A stretch of 64,000 nucleotides of DNA from Trichosphaerium sp. ATCC 40318 (Eukaryota; Protista; Tubulinea): the NCBI GenBank assembly GCA_038496445.1, contig JALMLS010000123.1:21165-85164 (forward strand), read 5' to 3'. This document shows, piece by piece, positions 50,893-62,174 of the stretch. The position numbers were made by a program, and so were the translations under genes. Position 1 is the first letter of the stretch. The number at the start of each line of letters is the position of its first letter. The notes under the pieces were generated by a model. It worked only from the letters and a program-made list of their open reading frames with translations, was not told where the DNA came from and made no database searches.

Positions 50893-53800
50893 ATGTCAAG
50901 TTCCAACGCAACTCTGAACGTTGGTATAATTGGATTTGGTACATTTGGACAATTCTTGGCTAGAAGATTTTCAAAATGTAGTAATGTAACACTGTACGCT
51001 ATGTCTAGAGGCGATTATACCAAAAAGGCAGCGGTACGACGTATTCACTACATTTACACGTAATTTTAATAACCCTCGACGTTATGACGCTAACACACGA
51101 TTAGGAGTGTGGTATTAAGCGCTATTATCGCTACGATGAGGCAAACAAGTTCTTTGAAGAGGTACGCGTATGTCAAATTACGAAATGCGCTCAAAACCCT
51201 CTCCTTAGAAAATAGATTGCGTCATACTGGCTGTCAGTATTCTATCATTTAAATCGGTTCTCTTAAGGTATGGCATTTAATGATCTTTGAAGCTGTTCAC
51301 TGGAAACGCCGCTAACGACTAGTCTATAGTCTCCCTTTGGATAAATTTGCAGACCGGTTAGTGGTCGACGTACTTTCTGTAAAATGTCATCCTAAAGGCA
51401 CGTGCACTAGCTGTTGATAGCTATAAATATAGTATTCACTTACAGTTTTCTTTTTCAGAGATCCTCACAGAACATCTTCCTTCTTCTGCTGATATGTACG
51501 TCGTTAAAGCTTCCATAATACTTTAAAATATCTCACATGGTACAAAGACTTTGCACACATCCCATGTTCGGTCCTGACTCAGGGAAGAATTCTTGGTAAG
51601 AAATAACATTTTCTTGATAACTTTCTTGCTTTTATTGACACTTCTCCCCACTAGGAAGGATCTCATATGTGTATATGAGAAAGTCCGTATTACAAATGAC
51701 GCAAGATGTTCCTCTTTTTTGGATTTGTTCTCTTCAGAAGGTTGTAAGATGGAAGTATTGACTTGTGAAGAACACGACAGATTTGTATGACAAAGAACTA
51801 GCTACCAAAACCAATCTAACAACTTTCATTTGTAGGGAGCTCAGAGCCAGTTTATTACCCATACCACGGGCCGTATGTTATCTGCATTGGTAAGTTTAAC
51901 TCATTGAAGATTGAATTTTTTTGACACGTGTTGTAGAACGTTGAGAAAACGCCTATAAACACAAAAGGTTTTGACATGTTACTTGGTCTTGTTGAGAATA
52001 CAATTCATGATAGTTTCGATCTATACTTTGGTCTTTACAAGTGCGTTTATTAGTACATTCCATTCTATTGTTCCTGAGTGACATAACTAGGTACAACCCA
52101 AATGCTCACCAAGTACTTGAAAACCTTAAAAAATCAGTCGAAATTGTTCATTCACAACTCCGTGCAAAAGAACGTGAAACTACAAACGACTTGGTTCATG
52201 AGTTTAGTAATGATGTAACATCAATACAGCCTTCGGCCACAATGGCAGTAAACCAACTAAGAATCGAGCTAGAACAACAAGGCAAGTCGAAAATAACTGA
52301 CACAGAATGGTTTTCTTATTTTTTTCCGAACAGGTCAAACCATTATTAAGTTCAATGTTGGAGAACCAGATTACCCAATGCCAAAAGCAGTACAAGAAGC
52401 GGTTGTAGAGGCAGTAGGAAAGGGAAAGACTTTATACACTGAGGTAAGAATCCAACTTCAAAACTCAGTGCACTTAATATTGATTAGAGCGCTGGTACCT
52501 TGGATTTACGCAATGCAATCCAAAAACACTTGCTCGAAAGAAAAGGATTGAATTACGGAACAAATGAGATTCTTGTAACAAGTGGTGGTAAACAGGCACT
52601 ATTTGAAGCTGTTAGGGCACTTGTAGGTCCAGGAGATGAAGTAGTCATACCAAAACCATACTATGTTAGTACTTTTTTACATTTGGTTTTAAAACAATTT
52701 GCTGATTGGATTGCTAGGTTAGCTACCCTGCTATGATACATTTCTCTAGGGGTATTCCTCGTTATATTGAATCAAGTGTTGAATCAGGATACAGGCTACC
52801 AGTCAAGGGTATTGAAGAAGCACTGAACAGTCAAACAAAGCTTATAATGTTCAGCAACCCTTGCAATCCAACAGGTACATCTACGTTACTGCTAGATCTT
52901 TACTATCACTTTGTTTTTTACAAACTTATACCAATCCAATATACTCACGGTTTGTTTAGGCACTGGTAAGTGTTAAGTTTTGAAGTGAAGTTAGTGGAAT
53001 ACAAGCGTCAAACTAACTTTTTGTTATTTCAGTGTTTTCTCGCGAAGATCTTGAAGCGCTAGCTGAAGTTTTAGAGCGACCTGAGTACCGACACATATAC
53101 GTTGTCAGGTACGCATGTTCTTTTATTCTTATTAATGTAATGATAGTGACGAGATTTATGAACGCATTCTATTCGATGACACAAAGCACGTTTCATTTGC
53201 AAAACTGAAAGGTAAACAATAAAACTTGCATTGTTTTTAATAACCTCTACAGGCATGAAGGAGCGTACCATTTCAATAAATGGTTTCAGTAAAGCATATG
53301 CTATGACTGGACTAAGATTAGGGTATGAGTTGGTTTGAGCCTTCATCTTTTAAAGTAATTTTTGAAATAATGTTTACGTTAAATGTTTCTTATTAGTTAC
53401 ATGGCGGCACCAGCAAAGATTGTTAAAATGTGCCTTAAGATCCAACAATTGATTACGTCATGTGCTTCGAGTATTGCACAACATGCTGGAATTTACGCAC
53501 TAGCACTCCCATACGACGTAAGATCTATCATTTACACCCTCGTTTTGGCTTTTTTGTTTAATTATTACTCTACAGGTGATTCAAGAAAACGTTCTAGAAA
53601 TGAAAGCAAGAAAGAATCTAATGATGGGTATTTTACGAACAATACCTGGGCTAGGATTATACGAACCTCGTGGTGCCTTCTACATTTTCCCTACAATAAC
53701 AGGTACATAAAAATCGCAAAGTGCTACGTTTTTTTTCTTGTTCGGAAATGAACTTCGGGCGCACGTGATACACGTGACGATAATATTTGATACAGTGTTT

Positions 53801-54046
53801 CTAAGTGTGATTTTATTCAATCTTACTTTGTTTGTAGACCTCTTGGGAAAGTCATACAAGGGAAAGAAAATTAACTCTGATATGGATTTCTGTTCCACCT
53901 TTCTTCAAGCGTATCAAGTAGCATTAGTACCTGGTACTGGATTTGGTTGCTCTAATGCGTTTCGTATTGCATATGTAACAAACCAAGAAACATTAAAGGA
54001 AGGATTGACACGCCTGAAGGCATTTGTCAACGAACTGACGGATTGA
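50893..54046 (+). CDS. Bifunctional arogenate/prephenate dehydrogenase (TyrA) + class I-beta aspartate/prephenate aminotransferase
   Basis: GIIGFGTFGQFLA, VDVLSVK, THPMFGPDSG, EEHD..GAQSQFITH, DSFDLY; then IQPSATMAV, VGEPDY, SGGKQAL, SNPCNPTG, SDEIY, NGFSKAYAMTGLRLG. The domain junction lies inside one exon. Confidence 0.9.
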
Positions 54047-54453: not shown

Positions 54454-57400
54454 TTAATTTTTTTTCTTTCGTACAGTAGAACATACAGGTAAGAATAGAT
54501 CTAAACTACCACTCCTTCTTGACTTATTAGAACAAAGATCAAGTCTCTTAGGAGGTTCAATATAGCCACTAGGATAAACCAACTTGATAAGTACACCAGC
54601 TCTTTTTGAAAACTGTGCAGCATCAGATAATATCTTCAGCCTTGATTTCAAGTTTGGATACTCTTGTATACTCTTTAATATATCTTCTTTACCACGATCA
54701 CGTGATCTACTACTCTTTATATATCTCTGTATAGATCGAACAATATTTATAAGAATCTCAATACCATTTTCTACGTTATCCAAGTTTTGTGAAGATAAAA
54801 AACTACACCATATCTTCCAGTGCCTTGCGAGCAAAGGTTGACTTTGTTCTATTAATAACCGTTAGGCAAAAAGAAAAATAGTGGAGAAAGAAGCAAGAGG
54901 ATAGTATATAAACAGAAACAAATAATAGTTAAAGGTGAAGGTTGCTGTTAGCAACCAACACAGAAATAAAAAAGTTTTTGAGATAATTCTGGGATTGTAC
55001 TTACGATTGAAGGCAGAGTACTGAAGTAGCGCCATGCCATGTACTTTAGCTGCATTATGATGATTTGAATTTGGTTTTACAATATCTACAAGTTTTTCCA
55101 AGCCACCACAAATACGTAAAGATACATGAAGAGAATCTAAACAACTTAGCATTTCACAAAAATAACATAAAACATTCAATTGTTAACAAAAACGGCGCAC
55201 AGTTGTATCTATAATATCTTTTACCTCTTATATTCTTCACTTGTCTAGTAGCTGCTGTTCTGGAGGTTTCAATTTGAAGCAGTGCCAATAAAACAGCAAC
55301 AGAACAAGGTATGCTTCCCAAATGTCTACAAAGTGCTGGGACCATTCCTGAACGTATCATTGCTTTATGCTTACTCGAAATTCCAGCTAAACAAAGAAAA
55401 CAAATTAGTTATGTGTTGAAAGAAAGCACACAAAGAAATTCATAGGTAGATAAAAAACAAGCAAAAATCACGTGATTTTCAGATAATGTTTGAATCATAA
55501 AGCAGTTCAAAAACTTTGTTTTAGCTCGAAAGTCAACCAATATAATTCAATTTCATGACTGCACTCATGACTATCGAAATACATTCACGATTGGTACGAG
55601 CAATATTGCAAATAGAAACAAGTTCAAGCATAATAGAACGTTGCAAGTATCTCATAAAATTCAAAAAGGTAATTCTAAAAAATTATGTACCGTACCTTTA
55701 CACAAAGATACTATAGCCATACAACACATATTTATCTCTTCTGGTGTGCTATCCTTGCTTTCAAGTGATATTTTAAAGTATCTTATAATATCTTCACCAA
55801 AAGGAACCCAATTATCCCAAGCAGTCTCAGCAATATACTGAAAGCCTTCTTTTCTTACGTCCCATTTTGAAGATCTTACAATCTCTAGTACATCAGCTGG
55901 ATACAGATGTGTATTATTTCTGTTCTGTGTTGTTGGTTCTTTTCTAGCTTGTTTACTAGAGTTAGGGTTTGTTGCTGAAGGTTCTACTTTGATATGTTGT
56001 TGCGGTTGTGGCTGAGGAGTCACTTTAGCCTTTTTTTTAGGAGGCAAATTTGGAGGGATTATTGGTCCGGTTCTGTGATCACCATACTTTCTCTTTGCTG
56101 TTTCTCTATCAATCCCGCGACTGGGCCGTTTGAGCTAAAGAAAGAGTAAGGAGAAGAGGTACATATAATAAAAAATAACTGGGTAAAAGAACGTACAGAA
56201 AGTATGGTATGAATAGGTGTTCTATCGTTAAGCTTTTTAGTGACACTTGGCTGCTGAGGTACAGATATATTCTTCAGACGTGATTGTTGCGGTAGAGGTA
56301 GAGATAATGATGATGGAGGCAGTGATAGTACGTCTGTCATGACTTTATCTTTAGCATCCGCATCTCCTGTCTTTTCAACATTTGATGGTAATGCTTCAGT
56401 CATTACTTGATCGCTATCCATACTTTTTGGAGCAACAGCGTCTTCAACAACGTTATTCTCTCCTACATCCATGGCATCAGGTTCAGGTACTTTTTCAGAC
56501 TTGTCATGCACATCAGAAGCCAAAACTTCGATTGTATTTTTCAACTCTGTGCGTTGGTTGGAAAAAACATTTTTAAGGTCTTCCAGCGTAGGCATGTCCC
56601 CAGGGTCGATATATGTTTTCAAATCAGGCACAGTCATAGAAGGCAGCGCTTTGGTGGGCTCTGTCTCTTTCTTGGCCTTAAGGGCTTTTGCTGCGATGAG
56701 CAATTGTTCGAGAGTAGTTGAAGGATGCTTTTTTTTAATATCTCCATCCTCTTCATGTCTTTCAAGTTCTGTTGAAACATGCCAAGCATTTGCCATGCTC
56801 ACCTACTCCAGTATAAATAAGAAATGTAAATCACGTAATACGTACAATATCCTTGAGTGTAAGAGAAAGATCCTTGTCATCTTGCCTGATTGTAATGATG
56901 CTCTAAGAGAAAATATGTTACGAAATTGTTGAGTTGGTTTTGTACCCCTTTTTTGCTAGCTTTAACGCGAAGGTGTTTGCAATTAGCCACAACTTCAAGT
57001 ACATCATCCAATAAAGGGTATTCGCTTATTAGTTTTGGTTCAGATACATTATCAACAGTTATCTCATCTAAGATAGCCTTGGCTCGCACTGTAAAAAGAT
57101 GAGTGCTTTGTGGAATGCTTGGTAAAAGATATCCGTACAGTTTCGTTTCACGTGTTCAACTAGAATCCTCTGATGTAGTTTACGAAGGAAAGCATGATCT
57201 ACTCCTTCCATCTCAGTCTGTAACCTAAAAATAGATATCAGTACAGGGCTTGAATTAAATAAAAAACCGTTGAGAAATTCAAAAGAAAATACTTACTTGT
57301 TACAGAACTGAAAGTACTTAGACAGGCGATTAAACAATCTCCGCATACTACTAGGTTCTAAATTAGCGATGACCTGGTGGATGTTCTCTTCTTTGACGCC

Positions 57401-60400
57401 TAATAATTACGTGAGAAGGGGAGTAGTACAAAAGCGAAATCTGGACGGCGAGCGCCAATCCAAACATGCCAATTTGTAATTACCTAGAACACCTATAATT
57501 TTCTGGAATAACTGTCGCATCTGTGGTTCGGCCTCACCATCACATAGGGACTTGAGAGTTGTTGAACCGTAATATTTAGCGAAAGTACTTGCTATTTGAG
57601 ATTTGGAGTTTGCAAAATCAACAACATGAACATGTCGTTTGCCCTTAAAAGATTTTGTTTAGAAGGCAAAAAAAAAGTATGGCAACTTCTGACGTTGAGT
57701 AGTACCTGACAAACTCTGCTGAGCCTACCAAGCGTCTGTACAACACTACATCCAGTAATTTTCTTATCAAGGTACATAAAAGCTAATGAAGGCTCATCAA
57801 AACCTGTCCGTAACTTTTCTGCAACAATGACCATTTTAATATTGGGTAACGCTCTAAAGGCTCTAACTGGATCCTTTGCATACGGACCTACAATACAAAA
57901 TAAATAAAGACGCACCATTAAAGTCTTCAAATATGTACTAACCATTTATCTTTACATCTCTTTCGGATAGTGCTTCTTCTTTGTAAATAAATGGGGTAAA
58001 GGCACAAACAATACCGAATCTCTAAAATAAGAAAAAAATCAGAAAGTCAAAGCACGAAAACAAGCGATCTCAGTGGAGGTTTTCGTTAAAGAACGGACCT
58101 GGTCTTCTGGTAGTGTTGCTATTAAGTCCTCAAACGCTTTTTTGTACAAAATAATCTGCGCTCTTCCACCAGTAACAACCATCGCTTTAGGTATGAACGT
58201 AGGAGTAGCCAGTTTGGTGTACTGCTCCAAATAATGCTCAAGCATAAATGAAGCCTTGGCGTTGATAGTGCCTTGGTCAAGTTTTGTATGCGCTAATAAT
58301 ACACGTGTTGCAGCAAGACCTTTGCATTATGGTTAAATGGATGGACAACAAAAAGCATTTTCAAAAGAACATACCAGCCTTGTAAACCTTGCTCTCTTCA
58401 CCATCAGATTTTAGCTTTAATTTTGTCAAAGAACCAACTGTAGCATAATGCGATAGAACATCCAGAATAACGCCATCTTTGATGGCATTCTATAAGGTTC
58501 ATGAGTTGTTCAACAACAAAATGTTTTCTGAAGGAAAATTGTCTCTTACCTCCATTGAGTACACGTAAAAAGGAGACACAGTCTTTTCTGGACCTTTATC
58601 AGGTACACCAAACATCTCCAGTGCGTTTTGCGAAGGTGTACAAGTAAAACTAAAGTAAGTGATCTGCTTAGACTGCCGTGTTTCTCCAGTAAGGAACTTG
58701 TGTAATTGCCTTGTAACAATCTTCCCCTAAACATTTTATACTTAACAACACGTCCAAACAAAATACAAAAAATACATACATGCGTTCTATGACACTCATC
58801 GGCAATGATAGCAATTCTGTGCTTAGAATCGAAGAAGGTAGGAATTGCCAAATGACCAAATTTTTGAATGGTAGTAACAACAACACTAAAACAAAAAAAA
58901 AGTCAAAGAATATTCATAGGTTAAAAATAGAGTTCTGTTACAAACAGTACTGACTAGAAAAAAAAAACTGGGTTAGTACCGCCATGATCCAGAGGTCAAA
59001 AGGAGTTGTAAGTGTCTTGCATTTGTTGCATGAGAAACATCGTATACGTTATGCATATGAAGGAAACTAGTAACAACTGTATTAAGTTGTTTGTCCAAAT
59101 GACGTCTGTCATTAAGAATGAGGATTGTGTGGAACATATTCTCACCACTCTCTGTCTGAAACAATACATTATCAATCATATCCCGGCGGGTTTTTTGAAA
59201 TTATGCATACCTGTAGCCGGTAGAGATTATAAGCCAGAGATGCTATAGTTATCGATTTTCCGCTACCTGCAATAAGAATTAATGGTTGTTCGTGTTTGTC
59301 TTGGCTTGCCTGCTGCATGTTGGATCAGGTAGTTACCCTTATCGCTAACTCTATCTCCAGGTAGCTTCATAACATCATCTAAGAGCCTGAATACCGTTTC
59401 CCATTGTTGTTTTCTGGGTGTAATATTCTTAAAGCTAGCCTTTACTTTTTCTTCAAGTTTGTCAATATCCTTCACAGTAATAACCTCCTCTAAAAACCGC
59501 ACGTGTCATTAATTGTTATCAAAGAAACCAATCAACGTACCACTACTGAGGTTTGACGGAGGTGCTTTGAGTTGAAGTTGGGCTACATCAGTGACATCCA
59601 TAGCCTACAGTGAAAGAACAAGGTCAAAAAAAAAACTTAGCAAGAAAAAAAACCAAAGTACATCTGCGACTTCTTCAACACTATCCTCATCATCTGAATC
59701 ATCGAAACTAACCGAAGAAGAATCAGATGCTACCAAAGAACGCCCTTGATCTGGTTTTAAAGCGTTATCTTCATCGTCCTTTGGTTCAACGATATCGCAG
59801 CTCAGTTTTCTGTGATCTAGTATAAAGTATTGCTCAGCGTCCTCACCCAAGTTTGTAACAAGGCTTGGCGTAACGTCCTAAGGGAAATTAAGTAAATAAA
59901 CGCTTCTAGCATTAAAACGAAACAATACGAACACGGTGAGGGTCGACAGAGGAACGTTCGAACCATAGTGGTGTTCTAGGCTTTTCTTTCTTTACGGACA
60001 CCTGTGATTCGGTTACGGCTGCTTTACAAGGCATTGAAGCGCTCTTAAACGGCGTTAATTTTTGCGCTTGACCGGAGGGTGTTCTTATTACCTGTCCTGT
60101 AGGAAAGCTTGATAGTTTGGGTGGTAAGGTGTTGTCTGGCTCTTTTTTTATGAGATTTTGAGATAGAACAGGCTCAGGTTGGGTGTCGGTTGATACACTT
60201 TGAGACTTTGTAACAGGAAGCGCGAGATTAGGGTCCAGCTGCTGTGTGATACTACGCGGGAGATGTACAGAGTTACTGACTGGTTGATTCTGTTGTACTT
60301 TATTTCTGGATGGCGCCATCTTCAGAATACGTATACGGTGGCCTAGAAAAGGGTTTGTAACTAATTGGACTGTTAACTGTAAATACCGATCTTCTTAACC

Positions 60401-60537
60401 CCCAACTCCTTCAGTAACTCGTGATTAAGCTCATCCAACTCATTAATGGTGATATCGTGCTCTTCGAACAATTCTACATACTGAAGAGCATCTTTTTCAG
60501 TAAATCCTACTGAATCAAATAGTTTACGCAAGGACAT
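54454..60537 (-). CDS. SAM domain + type I restriction enzyme HsdR-like SF2 translocase + NLS + ARM-like C-terminus
   Basis: SAM: YVELFEEHDITINELDELNHELLKELGVKKIGHRIRIL. HsdR motifs: PRKQQ, YLIQHAAGSGKS, DRRHLDKQL, TTIQKF, IIADECHRTHG, FTCTP, KAMVVT, VAEKLRTGFDEP..MYLDK, QTLGRLSR..GK..VVDF. Confidence 0.85.
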
Positions 60538-61096: not shown

Positions 61097-62174
61097 TTAT
61101 TCTGCTTGTTGCTTTTTTTTTGTTGTCTCTTCAGTTTTTTGAGCTGCACTGTAAGTGTTGGCATGTTTTTTCACATCTTCCATTGTTAATTTAACTCCTG
61201 GCCTCCATACAGGCGTTGCCTCTTCCTTAACTCCTTCAGTTTCCTTTTTATCACCCGTTTTATCAAGCAAGCTTGTATCTACCGCTTTCACCTGAGTTGA
61301 TGTTGTAGCTGTTGTAGGATAATAAGCACTTGGATAACCAGGAGAAGGTTGCATTTGAACACCATAATAGCTACTAGAGACAAAAAGTATCAGCGAAAAA
61401 AATCACGTGTTCTAAAAAAAACTCGAGAAATCTTGGTACCTGTAGACACCAACATACGAATTACGATATGGGCCGATAGGATAAGTTCTCTTCTGCGTAG
61501 AAGCGGACGTAGGTGATGTAGCAGAATAAGCAGTGCCATCTTGTGATTGTCCGTAGTAATAAGCGTAATAACCCTGTCTAACTGCTTCTGATGAAGCAGT
61601 ATTAGCGGCATGTGGTAGTCCTGTAGCGTATGGTTGCTGTTGTGGGAAAGGAGAAACAAAATAAGGCCATCCTCCCTTTATCTGCTTCTTACCGCGTTGT
61701 ATCTTTTGAAAGTTTTGTAATTCTTGGCTAGATAGCATATCCTTCTTTAATATATGTGTATAAGGGCAGCTTGGGTTTGTACATCTTCCCTGAAAGTTAA
61801 AAAAGCAATGTTTCTGTGTCACGACAAGAAGCTTATGTGTTAGTTCCGCGAAGTTTATAGAAGGTCTTATATGATTTGAGTGTAGTTCGTGATCAAATTT
61901 ACACGTGACACCATTTTTACAACCACCAAATAAGTTAAAATAACAAAGAGCTCTTGTTTTATCTAAAGAAAATAGTGTTATCACGTGGATTGTTTATTTT
62001 GGCGGCTGATAAAAAAATTAACTATTTATACCTTTTGACACGTGCGTAGTACGTTGGACAGATGTAGGTTGCCATGGTGGCGTTGTTTGAGTTGTTGGCA
62101 CTTCTAGTTTGTTTTGTTAGAATCTCCGAGTATATGATAAAATAAAATGTACTGGTGGGGTTGTATGGACGCAT
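61097..62174 (-). CDS. Tandem CCCH zinc-finger protein
   Basis: CYFNLFGGCKNGVTCKFDH and CFFNFQGRCTNPSCPYTH, then a Y/Q/P-rich tail. Ends approximate. Confidence 0.8.

Follow-up and report, generated by a model that had tools for sequence, protein, structure and literature searches.

We describe a gene on the minus strand of a 64,000-nucleotide stretch of DNA from Trichosphaerium sp. ATCC 40318 (assembly GCA_038496445.1, contig JALMLS010000123.1, positions 21,165 to 85,164), hereafter the window, in whose coordinates all positions are given. The gene lies at 54454-60537 and encodes a protein centred on the motor of HsdR, a subunit of the type I restriction enzymes. The original prediction, made from the letters of the window, had proposed such a motor at this locus. 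Type I restriction enzymes, machines of several subunits, are considered to be confined to prokaryotes. The coding region and its parts, in the order in which they are translated, are as follows.

54454..60537, minus strand: whole coding region, from the splice model and ten introns present as joints in RNA contigs (runs X1 and X2)
60314..60537, minus strand: SAM domain, residues 1-60, with intron 60343-60386 inside it; Pfam SAM_2 and SAM_1 on exon 1, intron confirmed by RNA
59488..60313, minus strand: linker 1, residues 61-265 (about 205 residues), low-complexity and acidic by composition, with four introns, in the place of the HsdR nuclease
57362..59487, minus strand: HsdR-type superfamily 2 (SF2) motor with both RecA-like lobes, residues 266-752, 11 exons; from the bacterial HsdR profile
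59253..59316, minus strand: Walker A motif AAG/SGKS, residues 323-329, split by a 43-nucleotide GC-AG intron (59267-59309); RNA joint from 59265 to 59309 in run X2
58789..58800, minus strand: motif II DECH, residues 431-434, aligning with the family consensus DEAH and the DECH of EcoR124I
57718..57741, minus strand: motif VI region VQTLGRLS (of VQTLGRLSR), residues 675-682; from the family alignment
56800..57361, minus strand: short helical region after the motor, residues 753-870, in which homology to bacterial HsdR fades (profile envelope ending at residue 794)
55928..56799, minus strand: linker 2, residues 871-1140 (about 270 residues), disordered, with basic clusters; linked to its flanking exons by RNA contigs
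56021..56044, minus strand: PPKKKAKV, a basic motif like a classical nuclear localisation signal (NLS), residues 1102-1109; from the sequence
54457..55927, minus strand: C-terminal helical tail, residues 1141-1446 (about 300 residues), four exons, ending in VRKKKN; from an RNA contig and look-alikes

The coding region runs from an ATG at 60537 to a stop codon at 54454-54456, with exons joined at GT-AG sites. Unspliced, the interval consists of many short minus-strand open frames; spliced, its 24 exons form a single open frame of 1446 residues that contains no in-frame stop. The 23 introns are 43-309 nucleotides long (median 57), and 22 are GT-AG and one is GC-AG. Four of them measure 43-44 nucleotides, which looks like the minimum intron size of this genome. 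The RNA evidence comes from assembled contigs of two public runs (X1 and X2) that match the locus at 99+% identity. In these contigs 10 of the 23 introns are cleanly skipped, with CT..AC at their ends on the plus strand, equivalent to GT..AG on the strand of the gene (60343-60386, 60044-60091, 59267-59309, 57400-57483, 56903-56945, 56803-56845, 56135-56196, 55387-55695, 55137-55224 and 54849-55004). The intron that divides Walker A (59267-59309) is the GC-AG one, and no shift of the joint yields GT-AG. In one RNA contig of 1392 nucleotides the four tail exons are all linked to the long exon of linker 2, and a second contig overlaps it and extends upstream across two further introns. Further contigs show SAM exon 1 spliced to exon 2, as well as the removal of an intron within the first linker and of the 43-nucleotide Walker A intron. 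This is a genuine eukaryotic gene that is both spliced and expressed. The original prediction had counted more than 10 spliceosomal introns, one of them splitting Walker A, and both statements agree with the splice model and the RNA; an unspliced, unexpressed locus, which it had named as a ground for abandoning the idea, is contradicted by the contigs.

The RNA also records some variation. Over 56388-56902, run X1 yields a second contig that differs at 56419 (C>T), 56439 (C>T) and 56466 (C>A), changing three residues of the disordered linker (M997I, A991T and V982L, respectively). This contig looks like a second allele or haplotype. Six RNA variants were seen in total, three synonymous and three conservative changes in the disordered linker, a number too small to gauge selection.

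The assignment of the motor to HsdR rests on searches with sequence profiles and on fold comparison. A profile built from 45 full-length bacterial HsdR sequences matches the spliced protein with an E-value of 1.7e-94, its positions 257-752 (of 982) aligning with residues 272-752. Left unmatched are profile positions 1-256, on the nuclease side, and 753-982, on the C-terminal side. Because the match is confined to positions 257-752, we take the nuclease domain to be absent. On the same alignment, the protein also appears to lack much of the C-terminal helical domain that bacterial HsdR has: the alignment stops at profile position 752, and a helical region follows the motor. Some relatives reach profile positions 830-907. 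The exon carrying motifs V and VI matches PF22679 (T1R_D3-like, E 1e-8) and TIGR00348 (hsdR, E 7e-10), and the match of the exons to PF18766 (SWI2_SNF2 ATPase) is weak (E 0.002, below the curated cut-off).

A second profile, made from 19 eukaryotic relatives and searched against all PDB sequences, retrieves only the HsdR chains of EcoR124I (E about 3e-31). The match spans residues 268-734 of the 1038-residue chain and leaves out its N-terminal part. When the core of an Echinamoeba relative was modelled with AlphaFold (predicted local distance difference test score, pLDDT, 79.9), the 14 best fold matches were all EcoR124I HsdR, followed by the Type ISP enzyme LlaBIII, RadD and Rad54, with ISWI also among the lower ranks. 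The SNF2 family PF00176 has no match in the exons of the window; among the relatives it is found in P0109 only, at 19.6 bits, under its cut-off of 24.9. No SNF2 chain passes an E-value of 0.001 in the PDB search with the family profile. An established eukaryotic helicase family was thus rejected as the identity of the motor, since HsdR alone passes in that search.

The motifs that the original prediction quoted for the motor are all present in the spliced protein, with one letter to correct (PFYVYSMENAIKDGVILDVL, reading PFYVYS and not PFHVYS). They include FTCTP (residues 464-468), TGFDEP (653-658) and QTLGRLSR (676-683). In the alignment of 19 family sequences, Walker A, the D and E of motif II, the T and P of motif III and the Q, T, R and R of motif VI are invariant. 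By these matches the motor is complete, with both lobes and every ATPase and translocase motif kept and the nuclease lost, and the earlier claim of HsdR rather than a generic SF2 helicase holds across the bacterial profile, the PDB search, the fold matches of the relative, TIGR00348, PF22679 and PF18766.

At the N-terminus, exon 1 alone matches SAM_2 (PF07647, E 4.5e-6, 27.2 bits against a cut-off of 20.5) and SAM_1 (PF00536, E 8.8e-5, 23.2 bits against a cut-off of 23), and the SAM motif runs on across the RNA-confirmed intron (...GVKKIG/HRIRIL). This N-terminus aligns with the SAM N-termini of two relatives, P0156 from Echinamoeba (E 1.5e-11) and P0028 (E 1.6e-10). The closest solved SAM domains are those of DGK-delta, Caskin, Tankyrase and ANKS3, with weak E-values of 7e-4 to 0.06; these four are known to self-associate. 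Linker 1 consists of 65% disorder-promoting residues, and one of its introns (60044-60091) is seen in RNA. The linker open reading frames (ORFs) and the N-terminal linker stretch match no Pfam family. That a SAM domain and a disordered linker stand where HsdR has its nuclease, as had been proposed, fits both this result and the unmatched profile positions 1-256.

Linker 2, which also matches no Pfam family, is composed of 64% disorder-promoting residues and contains KRPSRGIDRETAKRK as well as PPKKKAKV, found with the letters and at the position first reported for it. From its motif, PPKKKAKV may function as an NLS. For the tail, language-model look-alikes of two separate pieces belong to the ARM, HEAT, TOG, PSMD5, UNC45 and V-ATPase-H families (scores 0.87-0.96, to be read as leads). 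As a lead, then, the tail is possibly an alpha-solenoid of the ARM/HEAT-like kind.

The protein of the window is not itself in the protein collections searched; the best HMMER match with the motif V-VI exon, among 1.84 billion representatives, has 61% identity. The closest full-length relatives have 37-43% identity over the motor, and nearly all of those with a species name are from Amoebozoa: Balamuthia (KAL6056802.1), dictyostelids (Tieghemostelium KYQ93880.1 and KYQ90843.1, Cavenderia XP_004355786.1, Polysphondylium KAF2069682.1), Echinamoeba (EP01122_P016117), Thecamoeba, Pyxidicula, Mastigella, Pelomyxa and three species of Entamoeba. Public databases list them as hypothetical proteins or helicases, and the Balamuthia one is named 'Type I restriction endonuclease subunit R'. 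In the literature that could be searched in full text, no description of HsdR-type proteins in eukaryotes was found; one apparent match, PMC13547706, was rejected because its text has 'HsDrosha' and not HsdR.

The modules attached to the motor vary among these relatives, and the loss of the nuclease is general. HSDR_N (PF04313), the PD-(D/E)XK nuclease domain, is in none of the amoebozoan relatives and in almost all bacterial matches. The Balamuthia mandrillaris protein (1700 residues) has an Arm/ARMC5 tail. Dictyostelid relatives carry Surp and ARM modules, Surp being present in three paralogues; the long forms with Surp are from Tieghemostelium, Polysphondylium and Dictyostelium purpureum, and a second, shorter group comprises Cavenderia, Acytostelium, Synstelium and Heterostelium. 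Those of Entamoeba have no accessory modules. The Echinamoeba protein P0156 is a complete transcript ORF with the same order of SAM, linker and motor, aligned from residue 3 to 872, and the P0028 gene, on a Logan contig, is related to it and also begins with SAM. A SAM-first layout is thus, as far as the alignments go, common to the window protein and the Echinamoeba-type relatives.

Beside the amoebozoan clade there is another eukaryotic one whose HsdR motors lack the nuclease (P0186, P0161, P0170, P0220 and P0262). It includes the green alga Cymbomonas tetramitiformis and intron-poor contigs with eukaryotic neighbouring genes (peroxidase, DIRP/Myb). Several members have TFIIS-N (PF08711) and TFIIS-M (PF07500) after the motor; P0170 has TFIIS-N only. 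The TFIIS modules suggest that in this clade the motor may be tethered to RNA polymerase II.

We placed the family relative to bacterial HsdR with three quick maximum-likelihood trees of the motor (67, 73 and 90 rows). All 31 eukaryotic rows fall on one side of a branch, apart from bacterial HsdR, with a Shimodaira-Hasegawa-like approximate likelihood ratio test (SH-aLRT) support of 100, and the window protein falls within the amoebozoan group (SH-aLRT 96-99). With a distant bacterial HsdR as the root, the rows that lie nearest to this clade are HsdR proteins of the ordinary bacterial kind, including P0271, which is encoded in an hsdM-hsdS-hsdR operon. The family profile separates the two sets in the same way, scoring eukaryotic members at 462-747 bits and bacterial HsdR at 362 bits or less. 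A phylogeny against bacterial HsdR and protist homologues had been proposed as a check, and its outcome is a eukaryotic clade of full support with the window protein among Amoebozoa.

Intron positions add a second line of evidence. Thirteen introns interrupt the gene of Balamuthia and one that of Tieghemostelium, and both genes have eukaryotic neighbours. One intron position and phase is common to the window gene and the Balamuthia gene (about 0.06 expected by chance), and another position is common to Balamuthia and Tieghemostelium (about 0.004 expected by chance). The shared positions and the distribution of the family point to an acquisition that predates the divergence of the amoebozoan lineages. 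Horizontal acquisition, part of the original prediction, therefore stands insofar as a bacterial origin fits the tree, but the acquisition is an old, family-wide one and not peculiar to this organism. A route through giant viruses was considered and rejected: in viral contigs (IMG/VR, searched with the family profile) there are only relatives of 26-32% identity, on contigs of 10-98 kb, which are no closer than bacterial HsdR, and nothing links the family to giant viruses. By its sequence relationships, the family is a descendant of the HsdR subunit of bacterial type I restriction enzymes; it extends across Amoebozoa, and its sister clade has a green alga among the members. For the window protein, we regard this identity and ancestry as highly probable.

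The genes on either side are a class I/II aminotransferase split by introns and one with CCCH zinc fingers:

52500-54046, plus strand: class I/II aminotransferase, several exons, converging on the 3' end of the gene; from ORF domain matches
61412-61984, minus strand: ORF with CCCH zinc fingers, the upstream neighbour; from ORF domain matches

These eukaryotic neighbours, the introns and the RNA evidence led us to reject contamination, which the original prediction had also judged unlikely, and recent transfer. The 64-kb window has no tblastn similarity to HsdM, HsdS or the HsdR nuclease domain of a bacterial operon (all E > 0.5, and E > 1 for the nuclease domain), in keeping with the earlier statement that hsdM and hsdS are missing from it.

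Taken as a whole, the best explanation, to which we assign a probability of roughly 0.7, is that the protein belongs to an Amoebozoa-wide, HsdR-derived family that kept the motor and lost the nuclease, that docking modules were added in this gene, and that the protein is a nuclear, non-cutting translocase. Bacterial HsdR, a highly processive, ATP-hydrolysing translocase of double-stranded DNA, does not move until the M2S1 methylase has loaded and anchored it. When one methylase carries two HsdR motors, they draw DNA into loops from both sides, and in EcoR124I the C-terminal domain of HsdR docks onto the methylase. Because bacterial HsdR is inert without M2S1, loading and coupling of the motor described here would have to come from its added parts. 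We predict that the protein is an ATP-driven translocase of double-stranded DNA in the nucleus, unable to cut DNA, in which the added modules take over the loading and anchoring role of M2S1. The SAM domain could couple two or more motors, by associating with itself or by recruitment, and a partner bound by the helical tail could place the motor on DNA or chromatin. A likely job would be the remodelling or clearing of protein-DNA or transcription complexes, suggested by the Surp, ARM or TFIIS-N/TFIIS-M modules of the relatives. These same modules, along with the basic motifs, argue for a nuclear site and for links to transcription or RNA processing. For the mechanism of the protein our confidence is close to even but on the lower side.

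Several points weigh against this explanation. For every member of the family, ATPase activity, DNA and not RNA as the substrate, nuclear location and self-association of SAM are read from sequence, and the dependence of bacterial HsdR on its methylase means that an orphan motor would need a loader. The tail has no Pfam Arm or HEAT repeat (none at an E-value of 1 or less), and when tail and linkers were compared with all fetched relatives (phmmer and BLAST) the tail showed no significant similarity, the best E-value being 0.036, with Echinamoeba. From the single sequence, AlphaFold modelled the last exon with low confidence (pLDDT 43.5), as four helices and then an unstructured end. The ARM/HEAT-like tail of the original prediction is accordingly retained as far as the solenoid-family look-alikes and a helical, low-confidence model carry it, but not at the level of a recognisable repeat family. 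The trees were made by a quick method, and the deep branching within the eukaryotic clade is not settled by them. In the gene model, 13 of the 23 introns, mainly within the motor, are placed by sequence, frame and homology alone. One transcript from SAM to ARM had been put forward as a check: RNA joins the parts piecewise, but no single contig runs from SAM to tail, with 57646-59264 and 59412-59931 left uncovered.

Of the other readings, the one that survives best, though improbable, is a nuclear or cytoplasmic sensor-effector for foreign DNA, in which the motor scans bacterial or giant-virus DNA and a SAM polymer signals or sequesters, giving a defence that does not cut. The ancestry of the motor lies within a defence system, amoebae meet bacterial and viral DNA constantly, and the SAM domain weakly resembles SAM domains known to polymerise. 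The protein, however, has no nuclease or other effector domain, and the window holds no methylase or specificity subunit by which self could be told from non-self. The modules of the relatives (Surp, TFIIS-N and TFIIS-M) are of a nuclear housekeeping type, not an immune one, and the relatives on viral contigs are as distant as phage and bacterial HsdR. Deep sharing across Amoebozoa, with common introns, is also unlike genes of immunity that turn over fast.

An enzyme directed at RNA or R-loops is the second alternative: the motor would be retargeted to RNA, RNA-DNA hybrids or ribonucleoproteins, with the SAM domain binding RNA as in Smaug/Vts1. Some SAM domains do bind RNA, and Surp, a domain of splicing-factor interactions, is present in the three dictyostelid paralogues. 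The motifs and lobes of the motor are nevertheless those of a family of double-stranded DNA translocases that has no known RNA-acting member, and the closest solved relatives of the SAM domain are not of the RNA-binding type. We consider this reading quite unlikely.

It is very unlikely that the model wrongly fuses two or three neighbouring genes (SAM, helicase and helical repeat). The uncovered stretches leave room for such an error, and the long disordered linkers could conceal gene boundaries. Against this, one frame stays open across 24 exons, and RNA joins SAM exon 1 to the exon 2 of the linker, and linker 2 to the exons after the motor and to the tail. Moreover, the Echinamoeba transcript and the Logan contig gene hold SAM and motor in one ORF, and the Balamuthia and dictyostelid relatives hold motor and ARM tail in one gene. 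That the locus is a functionless relic of transfer in decay, or a bacterial contaminant, has bacterial ancestry in its favour and nothing further, and its probability is close to nil given the 23 spliceosomal introns, the expression, the eukaryotic neighbours, catalytic motifs that are invariant across the sampled amoebozoan lineages, and RNA variants that are synonymous in half of the cases and otherwise alter the disordered linker.

The preferred explanation, a nuclear translocase derived from HsdR, can be set beside several kinds of known system. With HsdR itself (EcoR124I, PDB 2W00; TIGR00348) the protein shares the SF2 motor with both lobes (PF18766 and PF22679) and the motifs PRxxQ (Q-motif-like), GSGKS/T, DExH, FTxTP, TGFDxP and QxxGRxxR, and among solved families HsdR alone is matched by sequence profile and also ranks first by fold. 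Unlike HsdR, the protein has no PD-(D/E)XK nuclease, apparently little of the C-terminal domain and no hsdM or hsdS neighbours, and its gene has 23 introns and has gained the SAM domain, the linkers, the NLS-like motif and the helical tail. The Type ISP enzymes (LlaBIII/LlaGI, PDB 4XQK), the second-best fold match, are single chains with an HsdR-like motor and no separate subunits, but they carry nuclease, methylase and target-recognition domain in the same chain, and the window protein lacks all three. The nuclease-less amoebozoan relatives belong to the same clade, with SAM first in the Echinamoeba-type proteins P0156 and P0028 and an ARM-type tail in Balamuthia and dictyostelids, although tails and linkers cannot be aligned between lineages and accessory modules differ.

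Eukaryotic nuclear ATPases reported to be drawn from bacterial systems of the restriction-modification (R-M) type include Strawberry Notch, HARP/SMARCAL1, MORC and SWI2/SNF2, and the review that describes them lists no HsdR-type recruitment (Aravind et al., 2012; PMC3417536). The family described here would follow the same theme, in which an ATP-driven motor of a prokaryotic conflict system finds a new use in the nucleus without its nuclease, but Strawberry Notch, HARP/SMARCAL1 and MORC have different motors (SWI2/SNF2 proper, GHKL), and the present family is confined to Amoebozoa and some green algae. It adds a new case to this theme. A conserved and expressed nuclease-less HsdR motor across Amoebozoa and in a clade with a green alga shows that eukaryotes kept the motor for a use other than restriction, with different lineages fusing it to SAM, Surp, ARM or TFIIS modules. 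A bolder proposal, which we hold to be possible but unlikely, is that the HsdR motor was recruited once, early in eukaryotes (at least before the amoebozoan radiation), into nuclear DNA transactions, with SAM replacing M2S1 as the hub that couples motors. This would give a non-cutting machine independent of a methylase, pulling loops or clearing polymerases, whose partners are read by variable tails (ARM, Surp, TFIIS-N/M). If so, it would be a further independent case of passage from R-M systems to chromatin, beside SWI2/SNF2, Strawberry Notch, HARP and MORC. The mechanistic question that the family raises is how an orphan HsdR is loaded and switched on, and dictyostelids, with two groups of paralogues and the genetic manipulation of social amoebae, are tractable test beds. 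The anatomy of the protein is well supported from its sequence, and we see it as a member of a wider, little-studied family whose function we infer.

Three further sequences were encountered near the family. P0468 (729 residues, without PF04313) was rejected as a member; it groups with bacterial HsdR, has 57% identity to P0391 and is a truncated bacterial protein. The locust Schistocerca gregaria has an entry, P0008 (XP_049848085.1, 'type I restriction enzyme HindI endonuclease subunit-like'), that is 41% identical to the protein of the window and, at 462 bits, scores alongside the amoebozoan family; contamination of the contig by an amoeba-like organism, or a transfer, could account for it. 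In a Logan contig from an Echinamoeba-like organism (L001:10001-14142), an intron-less SAM-HsdR gene (742 residues) is followed by a 638-residue ORF that overlaps it by 4 nucleotides and is probably the tail of the same gene, cut off by a frameshift or an unrecognised intron.

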